A DNA stretch of 64,000 nt. It comes from Histomonas meleagridis 2922-C6/04-290x. Lineage: Eukaryota; Protista; Parabasalia. The position numbers and the translations under genes are program-made. The stretch's first letter is position 1, and every line of letters begins with the position of its first letter. The notes beneath the pieces were generated by a model. The model ran no database searches. It was not told the DNA's origin and saw nothing but the letters and a program-made list of their open reading frames with translations. This document shows positions 3,069-64,000 of this stretch, piece after piece. Location of the stretch: positions 124,001 to 188,000 of the forward strand of contig JAANOX010000275.1 in the NCBI GenBank assembly GCA_020184695.1. Reading direction: 5' to 3'.

Positions 3069-3578
3069 AAATTTACCTCTTCATTTTGATATCAAATTTT
3101 GCTTAAATGATATAATGTTTTTTTTATTATGTTCAAAAATATAAAATATTTTACAATAAGAAAACAATTTATCATAAAATAAAAAATCAAAATAAAAAAA
3201 AAATTTGTGATATATTTATCCTCAAAATTTATGAACATTTATAATTGAATGCAAAATTAAATCACAAATATATTATTTATTTAAACAAAAATTATATTTG
3301 TTTTATGAATTTACCTTATTTAATATCAGCATGAAATGATCTTATCCGGATATTCGTAGCAGAAATTCTCGTTATAAATGTTTTTGTTGTTTCATTTTCA
3401 TTTTGTATTTCTGAATCATCGTTATTGTTAGTTTCTTCTTTTTCACTTCGAATTTGTACCAATCAAGCAATAAGTAATAACAACAACTACTACACAAACA
3501 ATAACAATATTGTTATTTGTATGAGATTCATTTGTGAAAAATATTGGCGAATAAATAATAATTGTTCAGTCATAAAAA

Positions 3579-5964: not shown

Positions 5965-6035
5965 TCATTCAATTAGTTAACGTGCGATGTCGGCGGTTTT
6001 GGAGGACGTTATGAAAAGAACGTTAAAGAAAAAAA

Positions 6036-6914
6036 ATGGAAAAACTTCCAGATCCTATTGGGCCCTACAAATTCGAACAACAATTCGATCAAAAATCTGT
6101 AGACCTTTACCTGTGTTTTAATACTCTAAATAATAGGCGTCAATTTTGTATGACAATTGATTATTCTTATTTTATTCATGAAAGTGTATTTAAAAAATAT
6201 CTAAAGTTTTGGCACCCAAATTTGTTTCAATTTACTGATATCCAATTTTCATTTTCCACCCGTAAATTTTATCTCTTTTTTCCTTATTCTGCGCAAACCA
6301 TGGAAGAAACTTTAATTCAACTTAGTGGGGCACCAGTTGAATCTAATCTTATATATTTTAAACAGTTTATGCTTGCTCTTAAATATTTACATGATCATGA
6401 TTTTCCACATAAGAACATTACTATTTCTTCAATGCGTATTGATAGTAATGGTATTCTTATCCTTTATGGCGCTAGCATTTTCCCAGCTCTTACTGCCGAA
6501 TCTAACATCACCGAATACATGGCACCTGAATGTTTTACTGGCGAACCTTATGACGAAAAGAAAGCAGACATTTGGTCGGCTGGAATTTGTCTTTATGCCA
6601 TGTTATATAATCACCTTCCTTGGATGATCGATGAAAACGAAGAAGATTATGATGGAGCTCTTGTTCAACAGATACAATCAGGAGAAGTTATTTATGAAGA
6701 TTTCCTTGGTAGCCCATATATTGAATTGATTTCAAGCATGTTAAGATTAAATCCCGACGATCGACCAACAGCAACTGAAGTCCTTGAAAATCCAATTTTA
6801 AGTGCTTTGGAAATAGAAAGATATCATAACGACGAAACTGATACTGATGGAAGTATTATAGCTCTTTTCGATGCAATTATTGCAAATGCTCAAGATATAA
6901 TTTCTGACGAATAA
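6036..6914 (+). CDS. Protein kinase-fold protein (CAMK-like C-lobe), probable pseudokinase
   Basis: YMAPE, DIWSAGICLYAML, LPW and RPTATEVLENP are present, but HRD is replaced by HKN, DFG by YGA, and no VAIK or Gly-loop is recognisable. Confidence 0.8.
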   Translation: MEKLPDPIGPYKFEQQFDQKSVDLYLCFNTLNNRRQFCMTIDYSYFIHESVFKKYLKFWHPNLFQFTDIQFSFSTRKFYLFFPYSAQTMEETLIQLSGAPVESNLIYFKQFMLALKYLHDHDFPHKNITISSMRIDSNGILILYGASIFPALTAESNITEYMAPECFTGEPYDEKKADIWSAGICLYAMLYNHLPWMIDENEEDYDGALVQQIQSGEVIYEDFLGSPYIELISSMLRLNPDDRPTATEVLENPILSALEIERYHNDETDTDGSIIALFDAIIANAQDIISDE

Positions 6915-7187
6915 ATTCTATGTTTTTATAAAAATGTGGTAATTTACTAAACAAACTTAATGTAAAATTTTTTGTATATCTTAATCCTGTGTGTATTGGT
7001 GTTTAAATCGCTTCTGTAAAAATAAACGCAAATAAACGGTATTCAGCAAATGTGAGCAAAATTTCTGTTTTGTCATAAGAAATTTCTGATCGGATTTAAA
7101 AGTCTGTTATTTTATTCAATTTGGAACATAAAAGTGTCAATTAAAGGTGCCTCATATTTTAAACGTTCGATAATATTCAAAATTTCC

Positions 7188-10100
7188 ATGGATACACTTC
7201 CATTGGTAACTCCTACACCAGATATAGATACATGGTTTGATGTTATTTCACAAATAATCGAGAATCCTATAAATTTAAAAGGTTATCTAAATGACATACA
7301 AGATGTTTTTCAATCAATTATAAATAACAAAGACATCAAAAAACTTTATATGATTAAAGAACATAGTTTGCTTAATAAGCTAAATCATTACATTCTACAA
7401 AAAATAATATGTTTTAATAAGTTAAGTAAGGAAGATTCCGAAATTGTCGTTACTCTCTTAACATTTTTTGTAGATTTGATACCAAAGTGTATTGTAACCC
7501 AAGATGAAAAATTAATATCAATTATTAACACAATTTTTGAAAGCTCTTCATTATATCAATCAAACCCAGAAATCTTTAAATCTGTTTGTAATTATTTTAT
7601 AAAAGCAGAGTATTACAAAGAAATTGAAGAAGCTCTAACAATTGATCTCACAAATTCTGATTATCTCATATCAATTACCAAACCTATATTTCTAAGTCTT
7701 TCAATAAAAAATTTCATTGATTTCAACAGCTTTACTGATTCTTATACGAAAGCCTTTAACACCATATTCACAACTTCACCAGAGAAAAACTTGACAATTT
7801 TATTTCAAAACTTATTTAATGAAATCAAACGCCAAAAAATCAAAGCGAACGAATTTCTATTAAAATGGTTCGACTTAATATTTAATTACATTAATTATCA
7901 AAGTATTAATCAAAGCTTTTTTTCATTAAAAGCGTTATATTATTTTTTGACCAATGACTTTTACATGAAACAAATTTTAACTTATATAAATAATGATAAA
8001 AAACTTATCCACAAAATTCTTAAAATACCAATTCGTGAAGAGCATAGCCAATATTTATCCAAAATATATGAAATTCTTATTAAAAATTCAATAATTACAA
8101 TGACTGAAATCGAGCAATTATGGAATTTACATTCGACACAACACATAAGTTTGCTTCCAAGTTATTATAATGTATTTAATGGTATTAGTTATGGAATATT
8201 AGAAAACCAAATCAAGAATTATGAAGAGTTAATATTTAATCCTAAAACTAAAACTAAAGAATGGTTAAACTTTATCATTAACACTGGAAATATATTTCTA
8301 AAACGAGAATTTGATACAAAACCATTTTTAAATGTACTGAAGATTATAACAAAAGAAAATAATTCCGAACTAAAAACAATTTCTAATAAATCGTTACCAA
8401 ATTTTATTGCTTATTCAATGACTATTGAAGAATGCAAAGAATTTTTAAGTGAATTTGAAAAGAAATTATCGAAAAAGAAAGTCGATTCATCAAGTTTTAA
8501 AATATTTAATATAATTTATGAACAAAAAAATGTAAAAGATTTTAATTATCAAAATTTGGTTCCATTATTATTTAGTTTTTTAGGGAAAAATTGTAATTTT
8601 GATATAATCATTTCAACAATTAAAAAGATTATAACAAACGAAACAAATATAACTAAATCAATGATAAAGAAATTAATAAAAAACGAAACTTATTCCAATA
8701 AATGTTATCAATTGTTACGATATTTAATTAAAAATAATTATATTGATATTAATATCTTCTTAAATATTATAAAACCAGATGATTTAACTGCAGATTTTTA
8801 TGATTTAATCAAAGAAATTATTTTCGATTCTAATCCAAGTTGTAAAGAACATAAAATAGATAAATATCCACTTGAAAAAGAAGACATTATATGGCATTTT
8901 GCTTTATATTCGAAAGCTAAAAATAGATTCCAATATTTGTTATCTAGAATTTATACTTGGAATCAATGTGATGATCATGAAATGATTTTAAAATTTTATA
9001 ATCAATGGAAATCTTTATTTATTAAAGCAACTGATAATCAAATTAAAGATTACTTGATTTCACTTTTAGAGAAGTTTATCGAAAAGTACGAGTTTTTAAT
9101 TGATGTTCCTTTTGAACGACATAGATTTTTAAATGAATACAACAAAATTAATATTAAAGTTAATAATAAAATTTATACAGTTGATTGCGAAAATTCAATT
9201 TCATCTTTAGCACAAAAAATTTCACCAAATCAACGAATTAATTTAATGTATAAAAAACAAATTTTAGATCCGAAAAGTATAATTAAAAGTAATTTTAAAA
9301 ATTATTATGAGAAAGAAATCGAATTAACATCTATAAAATGTTATGATAAAGATAATGATATTAAAGAAAGAACTTCATTTCCTTCATTAGTTTTTGGTGA
9401 ATTAAATCTTTATGAATTAATATTTAATTCGCCAACTTCTAAAACAATTGAACTATTAAATCTTTTACCAACTTATGATGAAACTATAACATCATTAAAT
9501 AACTTAAATTTCGAATTAGATAAATTCTTTCCTTATAATAACACAACATTATTTTTATATAACTTCCAAACTTTTATGATATTTTATAATAAATCAATGG
9601 ATGTAAAACTTCAAGAAATTGATATTTTACATTATTTAATTACATGTGGTTTATCTACACGTAATTTAACATTATTAGAAAACATATTAGAATTTATTAA
9701 TAACTTTTATGATGATCAAATCTTAGATAAATATCCATTCTTTTCCAATCAAATCATTGATATTATTCAAGAATATTCAACTAAAGCAGAGACATCAGCA
9801 AAGAAATTATTCCAAAAAATATTTAATTTAGGATCAAAACTCAGAAATTTCCAAATTAACTTAAATATTCTTGAGATTTTGTTATTAAATGATGATGATG
9901 ACTTTACTAAAAATGCATCGAAATTCTTAAAAAATATAAATGTTCCATTAGATTTATATGTTAAAGCTTATGATAATTCTGAATATGATCCGAATTCTAA
10001 TTTTTATGAATCATTAAGTCATCATATAACTCAAGAACGTAATAAAAGAGTTACAAATATTTCATTACTTAATTTTAATAGGAAAAAATGTGGATGTTCA

Positions 10101-58308: not shown

Positions 58309-60492
58309 ATGGCGAAATTCTTTAATGGCGAGATCAAAGGAGAGATTTTTCAGCTCCGGAATGAACTGGATGGTAATGATCCAGCAGTTCGAAAGGATGC
58401 TGCCAAACGAGTTGTTAATTTAATGCGAAGTGGCGAAAATGTTCAATCTTTATTTTCCTCTATGCTTCGCTGTGTCAAAACAGACGATCTTGAACTTAAA
58501 AAACTTGTATATCTTTATCTCATCAATTATTCAACACAAGAACCTGAGCAAGCAATTATGGCAGTTAATACATTTATCAAAGATTCCGAAGACAATAACC
58601 CACTTGTTCGTGCCCTTGCTGTTCGTACAATGTGTAGAATTAAGCTTCATAGTGTTGCTGAATACATGGTTATTCCATTAAAAAAATGCCTTCATGATGA
58701 TTCACCATATGTACGCAAGACAGCTGTTTTTGGTGTTACCAAACTTTATGATGTTATTCCCGAAGCCGTTGAGAATGCTCAACTTTTTGAAGATTTATTA
58801 CAATCACTTCAAGACGAGAATCCTATGGTCGTTTCAAACGCGACAGCAGCCATTGCAGAGATAAATGAAAAACGGTCCACACCCATTTTTACACTTAATT
58901 CCCAATCAATCACACCAATATTATCAGCCACCACAAGTTGCACCGAATGGTGTCAAACTATTCTATACGATGCCATCAGTCGATACAAACCCGAGTCTGC
59001 TGACGATGCCGACTTTTTAATCGATCGATTAATTCCATATCTCAAACACAAAAACCCGTCAGTTGTTATAGGTTCCTTCAAGTGTATCTTTTTATTTATG
59101 CCATATTCACATAAGAAAAACGCCGAAATATTCCCACAAATTATACCACCATTTATCACATTAGTCACATCTGCAGAACCTGAAATCCAATACGTAATAC
59201 TTCGAACACTTTCATTGTTCGTACAAAAGTACCCGAAGTCATTAACGCGTGAAATTCGTGTGTTCTTTTGTAATTATAATGATCCATCATATATCAAAAT
59301 GGAGAAATTAGAAATTATTGTAACAATTTGTGGTCCTCAAAACACTCAAATTGTACTCGATGAGTTTTCTGAGTATTGTAACGAAATCGATGTAATGTTT
59401 GTCCGAAAGACAATTAGATGCATTGGAAAAATTGCGATAAAAATCGAAGCATCTGTTCGTAGATGTGTTGATATACTTATAAGGCTCGTTGCAGGTAAAG
59501 CTGATTATGCTATAGAAGAATCAGTGATAGTATTATGTGACATATTACGGAGATTTCCTGGATCTTTCGAATCTACAATAGAAACTATTTGCGGTTCGAT
59601 TGAGCGTCTAAAAGATGCGCGCGCACGTGCTGCTGGAATTTGGATTTTAGGTGAATATTGCGATGTGATAAAAAATGTCGACATATTGTTAGACCCATTT
59701 TTAGATACATTTGGCGATGAACAACCATATGTACAGTTACAGTTGTTAACTGCGTTCGTCAAAGTATATTTGAAAAATCCGGAAAGTTCGAAAGACCAAT
59801 TACAATTCATTTTAAATGAAGCTGTTAAGGATAAATATGTTCCGGATGTTGTTAACAGAGCTTTAATTTATTGGAGATTATTATCTACAGATCAAGACTT
59901 CTCTAAGGAAATTGTCTTTTTCGGCAAGGACAAAATTCAATACGAAAACCAAAAATTTGACGGCGAAGTTTTGACAGAATTAATTCAGAACATGGGAACG
60001 GTTTCCGGGGTGCTCCATGTTGTACCTTCTGATTTTGTAAGAAAGAATCGATTTGTTCCTGAAGCAAACGATGATATCGGGTTTGATAATGAAAACTTAA
60101 GAAATTGGAATAAGGTTAATTTGGATAATGAAAAAATTATAGATATGTTCATTGATTTTGATGAAAATAATTTATACTTACGAATAGCAAATAAATCAAA
60201 TTCAAGTTTGAGCCAATTAGCATTGGCCATAAACGTAAATAAAATAGGCTTAGTAATGAAAGAAAATCCATCTTTTCCAGATGCAATTGAATCTGGAGAA
60301 ATTATAGAAGTTGTAACTCCGATCGAATTTGATCAAAGTAAAGCAGGAAACTATGATAAAAATGAATTGCAAATTGCGTTGAGAACGAACGCTGGAAATA
60401 TATTTGGAATGTGCAATATTCCATCACAAACACAAACTTCACAGACTAAACAACAAGTTAGTGATCAGTTGGTTGATGACTTGTTGATTTAA
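58309..60492 (+). CDS. AP-1/AP-2/AP-4-type adaptor complex beta subunit (beta-adaptin)
   Basis: KGEIFQLRNEL, LELKKLVYLYL, NPLVRALAVRTM, PYVRKTA, IFFCNYNDPSYIKMEKLE-like trunk, WILGEY, VVNRALIYWRLL, Ig-like appendage. Confidence 0.93.
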   Translation: MAKFFNGEIKGEIFQLRNELDGNDPAVRKDAAKRVVNLMRSGENVQSLFSSMLRCVKTDDLELKKLVYLYLINYSTQEPEQAIMAVNTFIKDSEDNNPLVRALAVRTMCRIKLHSVAEYMVIPLKKCLHDDSPYVRKTAVFGVTKLYDVIPEAVENAQLFEDLLQSLQDENPMVVSNATAAIAEINEKRSTPIFTLNSQSITPILSATTSCTEWCQTILYDAISRYKPESADDADFLIDRLIPYLKHKNPSVVIGSFKCIFLFMPYSHKKNAEIFPQIIPPFITLVTSAEPEIQYVILRTLSLFVQKYPKSLTREIRVFFCNYNDPSYIKMEKLEIIVTICGPQNTQIVLDEFSEYCNEIDVMFVRKTIRCIGKIAIKIEASVRRCVDILIRLVAGKADYAIEESVIVLCDILRRFPGSFESTIETICGSIERLKDARARAAGIWILGEYCDVIKNVDILLDPFLDTFGDEQPYVQLQLLTAFVKVYLKNPESSKDQLQFILNEAVKDKYVPDVVNRALIYWRLLSTDQDFSKEIVFFGKDKIQYENQKFDGEVLTELIQNMGTVSGVLHVVPSDFVRKNRFVPEANDDIGFDNENLRNWNKVNLDNEKIIDMFIDFDENNLYLRIANKSNSSLSQLALAINVNKIGLVMKENPSFPDAIESGEIIEVVTPIEFDQSKAGNYDKNELQIALRTNAGNIFGMCNIPSQTQTSQTKQQVSDQLVDDLLI

Positions 60493-61000: not shown

Positions 61001-62143
61001 TCAATCTATCATGTTTTTCCTTTGACTGAGATTTTGAAATCGATTTTTAACATCTGTTTTGTCTCTTCCTAGGCGTTCCCCAATCAGTTTCCATTTGTTT
61101 CCGAACTCTGCTTGAAGATTGATCAAATTCACATCTTCATCGATTTTCCACATTTTACCTTCATTTATAGCCACTTTGTTTTTTACCTCATTAATGTGGC
61201 TGGTAAGGTACTGCAAAGCACTTCCTCCTCCAAGATCCCTGACAAGTTCACATCTCCTGATGAAATCGGCTATGAGAGCGTCCATAAACTTGCTATCAAT
61301 GGAAAACCAAATTCTATTCAGCACAGAATAAATCGAATCACCTTATCTCCATTCATATTTTTTGATTTTTCTTTTCATGATCGCCCAAATATTTTCGATA
61401 GAAATAAGGTCGGGCGAGTTTGGTGGCCAGCCAGGAACCACAATTGCTTTATCAGATAGCCACTTTATTGTTTGTGATGCATTATGGCAAGGAGCGCCAT
61501 CTTGCATAAAACACCACTTAAATTGACCATATTTCATGACACATGTCTGAATTACTTTGCTATATTTTATAATTCTTTGTTATTCTCCTGCATCAACGAA
61601 ACCTGAGCATCTCATCAATGGCGACCGATAACCAATCCCAATTGCTCCCCAAACCATAGCTCCAGGATTGAAATTGGTTTTTTCAGCAAAATATGTATCA
61701 TTCCGATGGCCGCGCTTTATCCTTCTCCAGCAATTGTTGGGCCCTCTTTCAAATCTGCATTCATCAGCAAAAACTATATTGCTGACTTGGGATTGGTTAT
61801 CAAGTACTTATTGACAAAACTCTAATCGCATATGTTTTTGTACTTCTGTGACTTCTTGCTTGATATATGGCGACCTGTAAATAAAACCCTGCTTTCTTCT
61901 TGCTCTAACAATTGTGGACTTTGAGATACTTGTTGCATATATTTTATTTACAGCTGAGGCAATGTCTCCATCTGTAAGCCTAGCATTAGCATAAGAAAGC
62001 ATCTCAATATAATCTGACATCGATTCAGTTAAACAAGGAGGTCGTCCAACTCTGTGATTCATTTTCACTCTCTTCTTTATTGCAGAAATCCTCCTGGAGC
62101 TGATGTTCAGGATTGTAATCTTATGATTGTTTTTCTGGTTAAC
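61001..62143 (-). mobile_element. Tc1/IS630-family (DD34E) transposase pseudogene fused in frame to a C-terminal Myb domain (copy 2, divergent family)
   Basis: Manual translation gives one frame with TAA at 61808-10, 61580-82 and 61343-45: GRPP HTH, IVFADECRF, AMVWGAIG, MQDGAPCH, WPPNSPDLISIE (DD34E), transposase tail IWFSID..GGGS, then Myb WKIDEDVNL..FGNKWKLIGERLGR..VKNRF. Confidence 0.85.
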
Positions 62144-62248
62144 TTATTTTTTTTTTTTTTAGACTCAGCACATAGTGACGATAACAAAGTTTGTTCACTC
62201 AATGGGCAATCTATTTTTTTCTTTTTTTCTTTTTCTTTAATCCAAGGT

Positions 62249-62385
62249 ACCCCCTCCCCCAAAAGAAGCCCTAATGGCGAATGAGTGCATTTATCACGAG
62301 CTGGCCGTAGCCCGACCTCGCGGAGCCCTTTTTTATATAAGGGCGGAGACAGGTGATCAGTATAAAGTGTACTAGGGGAGGGGGT
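62249..62385. other. GC-rich nested inverted-repeat island downstream of Rep (candidate origin or element terminus)
   Basis: Outer 11-bp IR accccctcccc (62249-59)/ggggagggggt (62375-85); inner hairpin gccctt-ttttatat-aagggc (62325-62344); CTAG at 62372-75. Confidence 0.6.
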
Positions 62386-62704
62386 TAGGCACTTTTTTTA
62401 ATTTGATTTTTGCCCGTTATTTGAGAACGTTAAAAATAAAAATTTTAGGCTCAGGACCCATATTTCGAAAAACGTTAACTGGTACCTCCTTTCAAGATCA
62501 TGTTACCCTGACCTAAATATGAATTTTCGTCCCAATTTAATGAAAAACGGACACCAGATTTGAATACTTTATTTGCAAATTCAATTCATTTTGATCGTCT
62601 TTCGACCGATAGGATTTTTGTCCCATTCATATATTTGTGTCACTTTTGCTGTCAATTTTGGTACCTTCAATAAAATTTAAGGATAAAATTGTCAAATGAA
62701 TTGT

Positions 62705-63664
62705 TTATTGATTTAACGGTTCCAGGTCCCTTTGTAAATTCAAATCCTCAGGCCCTTTCACCTCAATTTCTTTAAATCTTCGTCTTATTGCCAGTCCATC
62801 GTCCCCCGGAAATACTGTATCAATAGAGTAATTGCTTGTAACGATCAGGTTAAAAGTGCCAGGATCGATCATAACTTCTCCGTTCTTAACTTCTCCTATG
62901 AACGAGTAACGGTCGCTCCATATTTTCATGAGCTGCGCAAACGGTCTCCCATCAGATGGAAAGTCTTCGAATATGACCAGTGTATGTTCTCCGGGCCTAA
63001 AACTGTCCCACCACTTGTTGCACATTTTAGGATAAATCTGGGACAACGGTTTTTTAGTTCTAGCCCAATGACTTTTTCCTGTACCAGGGGGTCCCCAGAT
63101 CCAATAGTTCTTTTTCTCCAATTGACCTGGCCAATCATTATGTACTTTCATGTGACTTATTTTATAGTTCTCCAATCTCTTCTGATGATAAAACGCTTGA
63201 ATTGGATATTTATCTTCAAATTGTTCCCATTTCATAGTCATAACATTCGATAACATTTGTTTCATTTTATCTTCTTTGGATTTATATAACTGAGTCTCCA
63301 TAGTCATTTCTCCATATTCATAATGTTCTCCACCATATTTAGTACAATATTTATAATTGTCTAGTTCACTGCCTCTAGCAATGTCCCAGAAACAATTAGT
63401 TTTGGCCATTAAAGTATTCTTATAAACTCTTTCATCAAATCGAATGTAACCTTGTATATGCTTCGTTCCTGTACTTGGTGCAAACTCTACTTCAGCAATC
63501 ATGTAACTAACCATTGAGAAACTTTCTAATGTTTCTTTCCATGTATCTGGGGGGTTATTCCATGTGAATACCCAACGCTTTGCTCTCGGATTGACTATTG
63601 TTCTTCTTGGTGGCTCCACTGGTAACCTTGTAGCGTCCTTTCTGATTCCTCTCTTTGCTCCCAT
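62705..63664 (-). CDS. rep: CRESS-DNA-virus-type rolling-circle replication initiator Rep (HUH endonuclease + SF3 helicase); endogenous viral element
   Basis: RCR motif I WVFTWNN, II HIQGY, III YCTK; Walker A GPPGTGKS, Walker B VIFEDF, motif C IVTSN, Arg finger IRRRF; uninterrupted; ATG 63664 favoured (track start 63700 is TTG). Confidence 0.93.
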   Translation of the reverse strand: MGAKRGIRKDATRLPVEPPRRTIVNPRAKRWVFTWNNPPDTWKETLESFSMVSYMIAEVEFAPSTGTKHIQGYIRFDERVYKNTLMAKTNCFWDIARGSELDNYKYCTKYGGEHYEYGEMTMETQLYKSKEDKMKQMLSNVMTMKWEQFEDKYPIQAFYHQKRLENYKISHMKVHNDWPGQLEKKNYWIWGPPGTGKSHWARTKKPLSQIYPKMCNKWWDSFRPGEHTLVIFEDFPSDGRPFAQLMKIWSDRYSFIGEVKNGEVMIDPGTFNLIVTSNYSIDTVFPGDDGLAIRRRFKEIEVKGPEDLNLQRDLEPLNQ

Positions 63665-63674
63665 AATTTTTATT

Positions 63675-63680
63675 AAGTGA
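63675..63680 (-). promoter_or_regulatory. Host-type initiator (Inr) element of rep
   Basis: Minus strand TCACTT, 10 nt upstream of ATG 63664. Confidence 0.55.
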
Positions 63681-63898
63681 TCTAAATATTTCATGATCAA
63701 TCACGACATTCAATATTTTTCTATAATGATTATTCCCATACATTTTGAAAGTTTCGGTTCAGAATTCAATCAAAATATTTGATCGTAAATAAAGTATTCA
63801 ATGCAGTGTTGTAATTGTCAAAGTTTTTAATGAATTAAGGAAAAAGTAAATTCCTTCTTGTCACTGATGTGGGAATATCATTTTTATTTTTTAGTCAA

Positions 63899-63994: not shown

Positions 63995-64000
63995 GAAAAA

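Follow-up and report, generated by a model that had tools for sequence, protein, structure and literature searches.

Histomonas meleagridis is a parabasalid parasite of poultry, and the 64,000-nucleotide stretch of its genome analysed here (the window) carries near one end an intact Rep gene of the cressdnavirus type. This raises the question of whether the gene belongs to an endogenous viral element (EVE), has been domesticated by the parasite, or drives a rolling-circle transposon, the three readings offered by a first-pass annotation that had noted host-like expression signals and no capsid gene. Our analysis indicates that Rep is very probably part of an EVE, namely a linear, slightly sub-genomic copy of a kirkovirus-type ssDNA virus in the H. 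meleagridis nuclear genome. Thus, the endogenous, Kirkoviridae-type part of that three-way inference stands, whereas the transposon, the capsid-less premise and the host-signal premise do not.

The Rep gene encodes both cressdnavirus domains

The span originally annotated, 62705–63680, runs from the Rep stop codon through a TCACTT motif, and contains two features:

62705–63664, minus strand: intact Rep gene (319 codons plus stop), HUH endonuclease plus SF3 helicase
63675–63680, minus strand: TCACTT initiator-like motif, 10 nt upstream of the Rep ATG

The frame is uninterrupted on the minus strand from a TTG at 63700 to 62705, and its best-supported ATG, at 63664, gives a protein of 319 amino acids. 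The product is exactly the protein encoded on the 259-kb contig JAANOX010000275.1 of assembly GCA_020184695.1, and is one amino acid apart from NCBI ‘Rep [Histomonas meleagridis]’ (KAH0797972.1) of the sister assembly. As in other Reps of the Cressdnaviricota, the N-terminal half is an HUH domain, identified by a Pfam Viral_Rep match (1.2e-11, residues 41–121 in a 331-residue reading of the frame) and by the motif II His and motif III Tyr/Lys, and the C-terminal half is an SF3 helicase, identified by a Pfam RNA_helicase match (8e-6), by structural alignment and by the Walker A, motif C and Arg residues. Among solved structures, full-length porcine circovirus 2 Rep (7lar, E = 1.1e-19) matches best; it aligns over residues 40–291 and shares the two-domain HUH and SF3 layout, although it belongs to a different family, the Circoviridae, and its similarity to the histomonad Rep is low. 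Circoviruses have two major ORFs in a genome of 1.7–2 kb. All alignment columns that are invariant in a comparison with 25–26 relatives are retained in Rep, including the HUH His, the YxxK Tyr and Lys, the Walker A G-x-x-GTGK, the motif C Asn and the Arg finger. The claim that the HUH and SF3 motifs are intact is therefore borne out by Pfam, by the 7lar match and by the invariant columns. The stop codon is directly followed by an A, giving the TAAA context that had also been reported.

A capsid gene lies just beyond the window

A 21-kb section of JAANOX010000275.1 around Rep, designated L001 (window position = 73665 minus L001 position, with no mismatch), covers the sequence past the window end. 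There, an intact capsid ORF of 170 amino acids occupies L001 8881–9393, equivalent to window positions 64272–64784; it begins 272 bases past the window end and 608 bp upstream of Rep, points away from Rep on the opposite strand, and encodes a protein whose N-terminus is rich in Arg. The sequence of this protein matches NCBI ‘Cap protein [Histomonas meleagridis]’ at 100% identity. The 165-residue ORF of the nearest free circular genomes aligns with it from end to end at 58% identity, and ‘Capsid protein, Po-Circo-like virus’ (P0335, E = 2.9e-28) aligns at 45% identity with 100% query coverage, a homology that links the H. meleagridis protein to the founding members of the Kirkoviridae. The AlphaFold model of the protein, built with 58 homologues, is an eight-stranded beta sandwich, or jelly roll (pLDDT 85.6, pTM 0.77); its best PDB match is the nanovirus capsid 6s44 (E = 2e-5), with further matches to satellite virus, geminivirus and circovirus capsids. 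The statement that no capsid accompanies Rep thus holds for the window itself only because the window ends where it does. The first-pass annotation had itself proposed looking beyond position 64000, reasoning that an adjacent capsid would reduce the locus to an ordinary whole-virus integration; the capsid is adjacent, the premise that set this Rep apart fails, and by that reasoning an ordinary whole-virus integration is what remains.

Extent, gene order and state of the element

The integrated element spans L001 8654–11536 (window 62129 to window-equivalent about 65011), or about 2.88 kb, and is therefore about 0.5 kb shorter than one genome unit of roughly 3.3–3.4 kb. The gene order along the chromosome is ORF4 start, cap, ORF3, intergenic region, Rep and 3′ non-coding region, so that three further parts of the element fall inside the window:

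62129–62704, minus strand: viral 3′ non-coding region, 67–75% nucleotide identity to the free genomes L003/L005 and 87% to the H. meleagridis copy L007
63665–63898, no strand assigned: intergenic region between Rep and the divergent ORF3/cap/ORF4 block, 84% identical to its counterpart in the H. meleagridis copy L006
63899–64000, plus strand: start of a broken ORF3 homologue that continues past the window end, found by tblastn with the L002 ORF

Of the four genes, Rep and cap have open frames, a single in-frame stop interrupts ORF3, and ORF4 is truncated once, at the element edge. ORF3 is about 120 codons long in relatives; a tblastn search with the 123/124-residue L002 ORF covered L001 9410–9766 in a single frame at 53% identity, and no open ORF of ORF3 length is listed over that interval. 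Only the first 67 codons of ORF4, its first third, are present in L001, and the rest was absent from the 21 kb at relaxed thresholds with the free-genome ORF4 and the open ORF4 of L007 as queries, the latter copy keeping an open ORF4 of 210 amino acids. Across L001 8732 to 11536 the DNA of the element is 67–75% identical to free circular genomes. At the other side of Rep, homology extends for 576 bp downstream of the stop codon and ends at L001 11536, which marks window position 62129 as the right-hand edge. The stretch 62129–62704 had been read as host DNA; its homology to the conserved non-coding region of free viral genomes contradicts this.

The element sits between a Tc1/mariner relic, which adjoins the right-hand edge, and an unannotated repeat-like stretch. 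The relic is in pieces, with HTH_Tnp_Tc3_2 and DDE_3 matches split over separate ORFs and an additional Myb-like fragment, in line with the earlier description of a decayed Tc1 neighbour. Terminal inverted repeats, sought in order to place the Tc1 insertion before or after that of the element, were not found for this relic. In the left flank, an ORF of 399 amino acids gave only a sub-threshold rve match and one of 310 amino acids gave no Pfam match, and neither had a meaningful PDB relative.

Free circular relatives place the element in the Kirkoviridae

The closest relatives of Rep are 51–54% identical and are encoded on gut-metagenome contigs of 3.4–4.5 kb. The nearest of these have unit lengths of 3382 and 3317 nt, and their terminal redundancy indicates that they are circular genomes. 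In such circles, one strand encodes Rep and the opposite strand three ORFs of about 124, 165 and 180–218 amino acids; the element has counterparts of all four ORFs and of the non-coding region, arranged in the same order, with protein identities of 51–58%. The nearest relative is the 3382-nt circle (L002–L005; Rep = P0002), in which the gene order is identical and identity is 51% for Rep, 58% for cap, 53–61% for ORF3, 53% for the N-terminus of ORF4 and 67–75% at the nucleotide level for the non-coding region. Whereas this circle is complete with all four ORFs open, the element is linear, chromosomal, about 0.5 kb short and damaged in two ORFs. Bo-Circo-like virus (L011, 3912 nt) and Human fecal virus Jorvi2 (L010 = P0164, 3925 nt) are more distant, with Rep 38–44% and cap 45–48% identical and genomes about 0.5 kb larger. 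Like the element, Jorvi2 has ORF3 and ORF4 homologues and a C-tract/G-tract pair downstream of rep; Bo-Circo-like virus, in contrast, lacks this pair and has a stem-loop of different sequence.

We then placed Rep in a neighbour-joining tree of 40 Reps, a quick method applied here with few named references that are not ICTV exemplars. In this tree, Rep falls within a clade of 14 taxa (100/100 bootstraps) together with Bo-Circo-like virus, Jorvi2 and other H. meleagridis Reps, as sister to the Rep of the 3382-nt circle, and the 26 other IMG/VR cressdnavirus Reps lie outside. Rep thus groups with recognised members of the Kirkoviridae, now an ICTV family in the order Rohanvirales. Kirkoviridae genomes are described as encoding rep, a capsid gene and further ORFs (3–5 in all) and as larger than those of circoviruses (PMC12892396, PMC10654594); the element agrees with this description, having Rep, cap, ORF3 and ORF4 in the order seen in Jorvi2 and in the free relatives of 3.3–3.9 kb. 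Taken together, the Rep clade, the capsid homology and the Histomonas contig bear out both the family and the host group of the proposed Kirkoviridae-type EVE in a parabasalid.

A conserved non-coding region contains a candidate origin

Two features nested within the 3′ non-coding region stand out:

62250–62384, minus strand: inverted repeat of a C-tract and a G-tract with arms of 10–11 bp, enclosing about 115 nt with internal hairpins; candidate origin
62325–62344, minus strand: 6-bp GC-rich stem with an 8-nt A/T loop; candidate Rep nick hairpin, from single-sequence and consensus folds

The C-tract and G-tract arms are invariant in L001, L007, the free genomes L003 and L008, and Jorvi2 (L010), and the GC-rich hairpins between them vary in sequence from lineage to lineage. 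As DNA, the region folds with a predicted energy of -25.7 kcal/mol (z = -2.8), and none of 200 shuffled sequences was as stable. A stem-loop has been published for Bo-Circo-like virus AH20-1 (PMC10654594), and an exact match to it is found in L011 about 400 nt past the Rep stop; the candidate nick hairpin lies, like that stem-loop, in the non-coding region downstream of rep. The canonical NANTATTAC nonanucleotide has no match inside the element and occurs across L001 at the level expected by chance, and Rfam gave no match at E ≤ 1 in L001 8000–12000. Short inverted repeats in the Rep-proximal intergenic region were also considered as an origin and were rejected, as they are not conserved across L001, L003 and L008. 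We infer that the region downstream of rep with the C/G-tract pair is the likely origin region.

By extrapolation from the families involved, Rep of the free virus would nick a hairpin in this region, the nick would prime rolling-circle replication while the SF3 helicase unwinds the DNA, and the 170-residue jelly-roll protein would build the capsid. The candidate origin is complete and internal to the chromosomal copy, so that neither junction falls at it, and this favours end-joining over Rep-mediated integration; integration therefore most likely proceeded by illegitimate end-joining of the double-stranded replicative form, rather than through nicking by Rep.

The initiator-like motif is virus-borne

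With about one TCACTT motif per 2.2 kb on each strand of the window, the chance of finding one within 25 nt of a given ATG is near 1%; both strands of the window together hold 58 copies, as compared with 43 ± 6 in shuffled sequence. The motif is also found 11–16 nt before the Rep ATG in the H. meleagridis copies L006 and L007 and in the free genome L008, and in this free circle it precedes all four ORFs (Rep, ORF3, cap and ORF4). In Bo-Circo-like virus (L011), a TCAYW sequence lies at -12 of the Rep ATG. Three flanking host genes on L001, including the adaptin gene inside the window, have no such motif within 45 nt of their ATG. Since TCACTT is also present in free relatives, it was borne by the virus rather than acquired from the host. 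The motif reported 10 nt upstream of the Rep ATG is therefore real, but its interpretation as a host signal does not hold. Its presence fits a virus adapted to parabasalid transcription and says nothing on co-option by the host; together with the TAAA at the stop codon, it represents the virus’s own set of signals, adapted to a parabasalid host.

The element is integrated in two assemblies

The contig that carries Rep also contains kinase, adaptin and Arf genes in the regions flanking the element. In the independent sister assembly GCA_020186115.1, contig WSYJ01000177.1 (243 kb) contains the same 21 kb in collinear arrangement at 99.6% identity, with both junctions and the flanking genes reproduced and with the Cap protein (KAH0797971.1) bearing the accession next to that of Rep. 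Viral DNA is thus contiguous with host DNA on both sides in two assemblies, which derive from one clonal strain. The assemblies differ at 79 positions over the 21 kb, and 61 of these fall in a single stretch of about 600–780 bp comprising the 3′ end of Rep and the non-coding region, where divergence is about 8%; over the remainder of the 21 kb it is about 0.1%, with zero differences in cap, ORF3, the intergenic region, the right junction and the Tc1 relic. Rep itself has 12 nucleotide differences, 11 of them synonymous, and a pattern in which 12 changes alter one amino acid is not that of random error. The alternative version of the divergent segment is not closer to L006 or to L007.

The sequence of this segment is not settled in one or both assemblies. 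Heterozygous haplotypes, cross-talk between paralogues during polishing, or gene conversion may lie behind the 8% difference; Palmieri et al. 2021 counted 2,933 heterozygous SNPs in the genome, and their genome paper makes no mention of viruses or capsids. It is also conceivable, though we consider it improbable, that the locus is still exchanging sequence with a second, close kirkovirus-type sequence in the same cells. If so, the exchange partner would be either another chromosomal copy, acting through gene conversion, or a resident replicating virus, and the open Rep and cap, expressed from virus-borne Inr promoters, would be relevant to the exchange with that partner.

Other copies in the genome show the pattern of independent insertions

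We compared the element with other copies in the H. meleagridis genome. The copy L007 (JAANOX010000265.1) retains the point at which the non-coding region meets ORF4 and is cut near ORF3, L006 lies at a contig end, and L090 is a rearranged tandem array. A comparison of flanks, as the first-pass annotation had advised, shows that the junctions differ among L001, L006 and L007, and flank homology was not found among these three and L090. At the protein level, the Rep next most similar to the one studied here is 48% identical. Between L001 and L007, cap identity is 87% at the DNA level and 92% at the protein level, with a dN/dS of 0.064 and with 51 of 66 differences at third codon positions; the non-coding regions of the two copies are also 87% identical, although dS is 0.62. 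The low dN/dS and the bias to third positions imply that this divergence arose under viral-type constraint before insertion. The pattern among the copies is one of repeated independent insertions of circular genomes, and not that of a transposon with fixed ends.

A young viral insertion is more probable than a domesticated gene, a transposon or an artefact

The alternative that survives best, though we give it little credence, is that the parasite has kept Rep, and perhaps cap, under purifying selection, for example to interfere with incoming kirkoviruses, with transcription starting from the Inr-like motif. Rep and cap are indeed open in an element whose ORF3 and ORF4 are damaged, yet the damage to ORF4 is merely the edge of the integration, and the neighbouring viral genes and cis-elements are still present, unlike the situation expected after an old exaptation. 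The surroundings of Rep offer a plausible promoter and poly(A) context, but the promoter motif was brought in by the virus. Full-length Rep ORFs exist at three or more loci of the H. meleagridis genome, and only one of the 12 nucleotide differences in Rep between the assemblies alters the protein; the selective signature between copies is nonetheless that of independent insertions of circulating viruses. The openness of Rep can also be set against chance. Single substitutions create a stop in 5.9% of cases, so that Rep would escape a stop with a probability of 0.57 at 1% neutral divergence and of 0.32 at 2%, and the ceiling for neutral change since insertion, taken from a dN of 0.04, is at most about 2% per lineage. 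A 960-nt frame that remains open by chance with a probability of 0.3–0.6, at neutral divergence of 1–2% or less, needs no host selection to explain its intactness. The remainder of the virus is largely undecayed, an observation that argues against domestication and comes from one strain (two assemblies). We find no positive evidence for a domesticated gene, a reading that we consider unlikely, and we infer that the youth of the insertion, rather than any demonstrable need of the host, explains the open state of Rep and cap.

A Rep-driven rolling-circle transposon, that is, a cellular element copying itself by means of an HUH and helicase Rep, is far less credible still. Reps of this type have repeatedly been captured by transposons, dozens of Rep-like copies and a tandem array exist in the H. 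meleagridis genome, and the element lies amid other mobile-element remains, all of which might seem to favour such an origin. Against this, its gene content and order are those of free, capsid-encoding circles of 3.3–3.9 kb from many gut samples, and instead of the fixed termini and missing capsid of a rolling-circle transposon it has an adjacent capsid gene and no termini in common with the other copies, each of which is cut at a different point of the circle and flanked by unrelated sequence. The 48% identity to the closest other genomic Rep likewise speaks against a recent burst of Rep, and a search with the helicase half alone returned fragments on short metagenome contigs only, with no Histomonas kin. 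Replitron transposases lack a helicase, whereas Rep has an SF3 helicase. The suggestion of a Rep-driven transposon is therefore abandoned on the grounds of layout, junctions and flanks.

An assembly artefact, in which a host contig would have incorporated reads of a contaminating or episomal virus, can be dismissed with similar assurance: the 8% difference in the Rep 3′ and non-coding segment does show that reads from more than one related sequence shaped the consensus there, but the element lies inside contigs of 259 kb and 243 kb whose junctions agree, a sub-unit copy with a truncated ORF4 is not expected from a mis-joined episome, all Cap-bearing contigs of H. meleagridis are between 83 kb and 1.37 Mb with none of genome size, and Kinsella et al. 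2022 reached the same conclusion from scaffold homology in their account of such elements (PMC9615429). The element is thus a genuine and fairly young endogenous viral element.

Relation to published elements and implications

Endogenous elements of this class have been described before. In the sections of their article that deal with these elements, Kinsella et al. 2022 (Virus Evol 8:veac087; PMC9615429) report searching exactly the two assemblies considered here, GCA_020184695.1 and GCA_020186115.1, and finding a total of 145 EVEs, split into 104 Rep-like and 41 Cap-like ones; a maximum-likelihood analysis placed 102 of the 104 Rep-like EVEs in the Kirkoviridae. The authors used these EVEs to confirm parabasalids as the hosts of kirkoviruses, concluding that kirkoviruses infect parabasalids and not the livestock or people whose faeces contain them (PMC9615429). 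The assemblies, the kinds of element (Rep-like and Cap-like) and the family assignment are the same as for the element described here, and those sections give counts rather than the anatomy of individual loci (PMC9615429). Both genes also already have names at NCBI, as ‘Rep’ (KAH0797972.1 / XP_067770603.1) and ‘Cap protein’ (KAH0785550.1 / KAH0797971.1). The locus is accordingly a correct rediscovery of a published class, with genes that are already annotated in GenBank and RefSeq.

As such, the locus adds little that is new, and its value is that of a clean, nearly complete example with defined edges. What it contributes beyond those sections of the 2022 text are the bounds of the element, the state of ORF3 and ORF4, the conserved non-coding element and the virus-borne Inr. 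The strongly conserved non-coding element downstream of rep provides a pointer to the likely origin of this virus group, and the presence of parabasalid-type initiator motifs in free kirkovirus-like genomes offers independent support for the assignment of these viruses to protist hosts.

Copies of the element in the H. meleagridis genome

Besides the window's element, two further loci carry sequence of this kind:

L007 (JAANOX010000265.1), 6001-8937: second H. meleagridis copy
L090 (GCA_020186115.1, WSYJ01000075.1), 946021-966533: tandem array of rearranged kirkovirus-like units

The second copy, in which ORF4 is open (210 aa), shares 87% DNA identity with the window element across cap, ORF3, ORF4 and the non-coding region, whereas the two Reps are just 40% identical at the protein level. 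This disparity in sequence similarity suggests that modular recombination has taken place between rep and the structural block. The L090 array has a period of 6,724 bp; it contains several open cap genes of 170 aa as well as Rep copies that are broken, and WSYJ01000075.1 carries four NCBI Cap accessions in consecutive order.

We also compared the 21 kb around Rep (L001) with the same locus in the sister assembly (L009), the two assemblies representing one clonal strain. A single segment covering the 3' end of Rep and the non-coding region (window about 62265-62865; L001 10800-11400) diverges by ~8%, as against only ~0.1% across the rest of the 21 kb, and just one of the 12 differences in Rep alters the protein sequence.

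Neighbours of the element

Two features precede the element in the window:

58309-60492, plus strand: intact beta-adaptin-like host gene (Adaptin_N), 727 aa
61001-62068, minus strand: Tc1/mariner transposase relic, split across at least three ORFs

The former is the closest ordinary host gene to the viral element. The relic, whose first coding ORF starts 61 bp from the element's edge, comprises in order HTH_Tnp_Tc3_2, DDE_3 and a Myb-like DNA-binding fragment, and terminal inverted repeats were not detectable in it. On the far side, L001 5339-7919 (window-equivalent 65746-68326) holds two long unannotated ORFs, together with a small cluster of inter-assembly differences. The 399 aa ORF gave a sub-threshold integrase-core (rve) match and a search for relatives of the 310 aa ORF found none; both may be part of another mobile element.

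A candidate origin and the likely host

Downstream of rep, the non-coding region of kirkovirus-like genomes contains an invariant C-tract/G-tract inverted repeat that flanks variable GC-rich hairpins:

Window element: 62250-62384
L007: 7252-7386
L003 (free circular genome, 3382 nt): 1804-1937
L008 (free circular genome, 3317 nt): 3230-3355
L010 (Human fecal virus Jorvi2): 1300-1439

This region, which has neither an Rfam match nor a canonical nonanucleotide, is a candidate origin for these genomes.

Finally, each of the four ORFs in the free genome L008 has the parabasalid-type initiator hexamer TCACTT ahead of it, 11-27 nt before the start codon, and in L007 and a further H. meleagridis locus (L006) the hexamer occurs upstream of Rep. 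Its placement before the start codons of a free viral genome provides sequence-level support for a parabasalid host.
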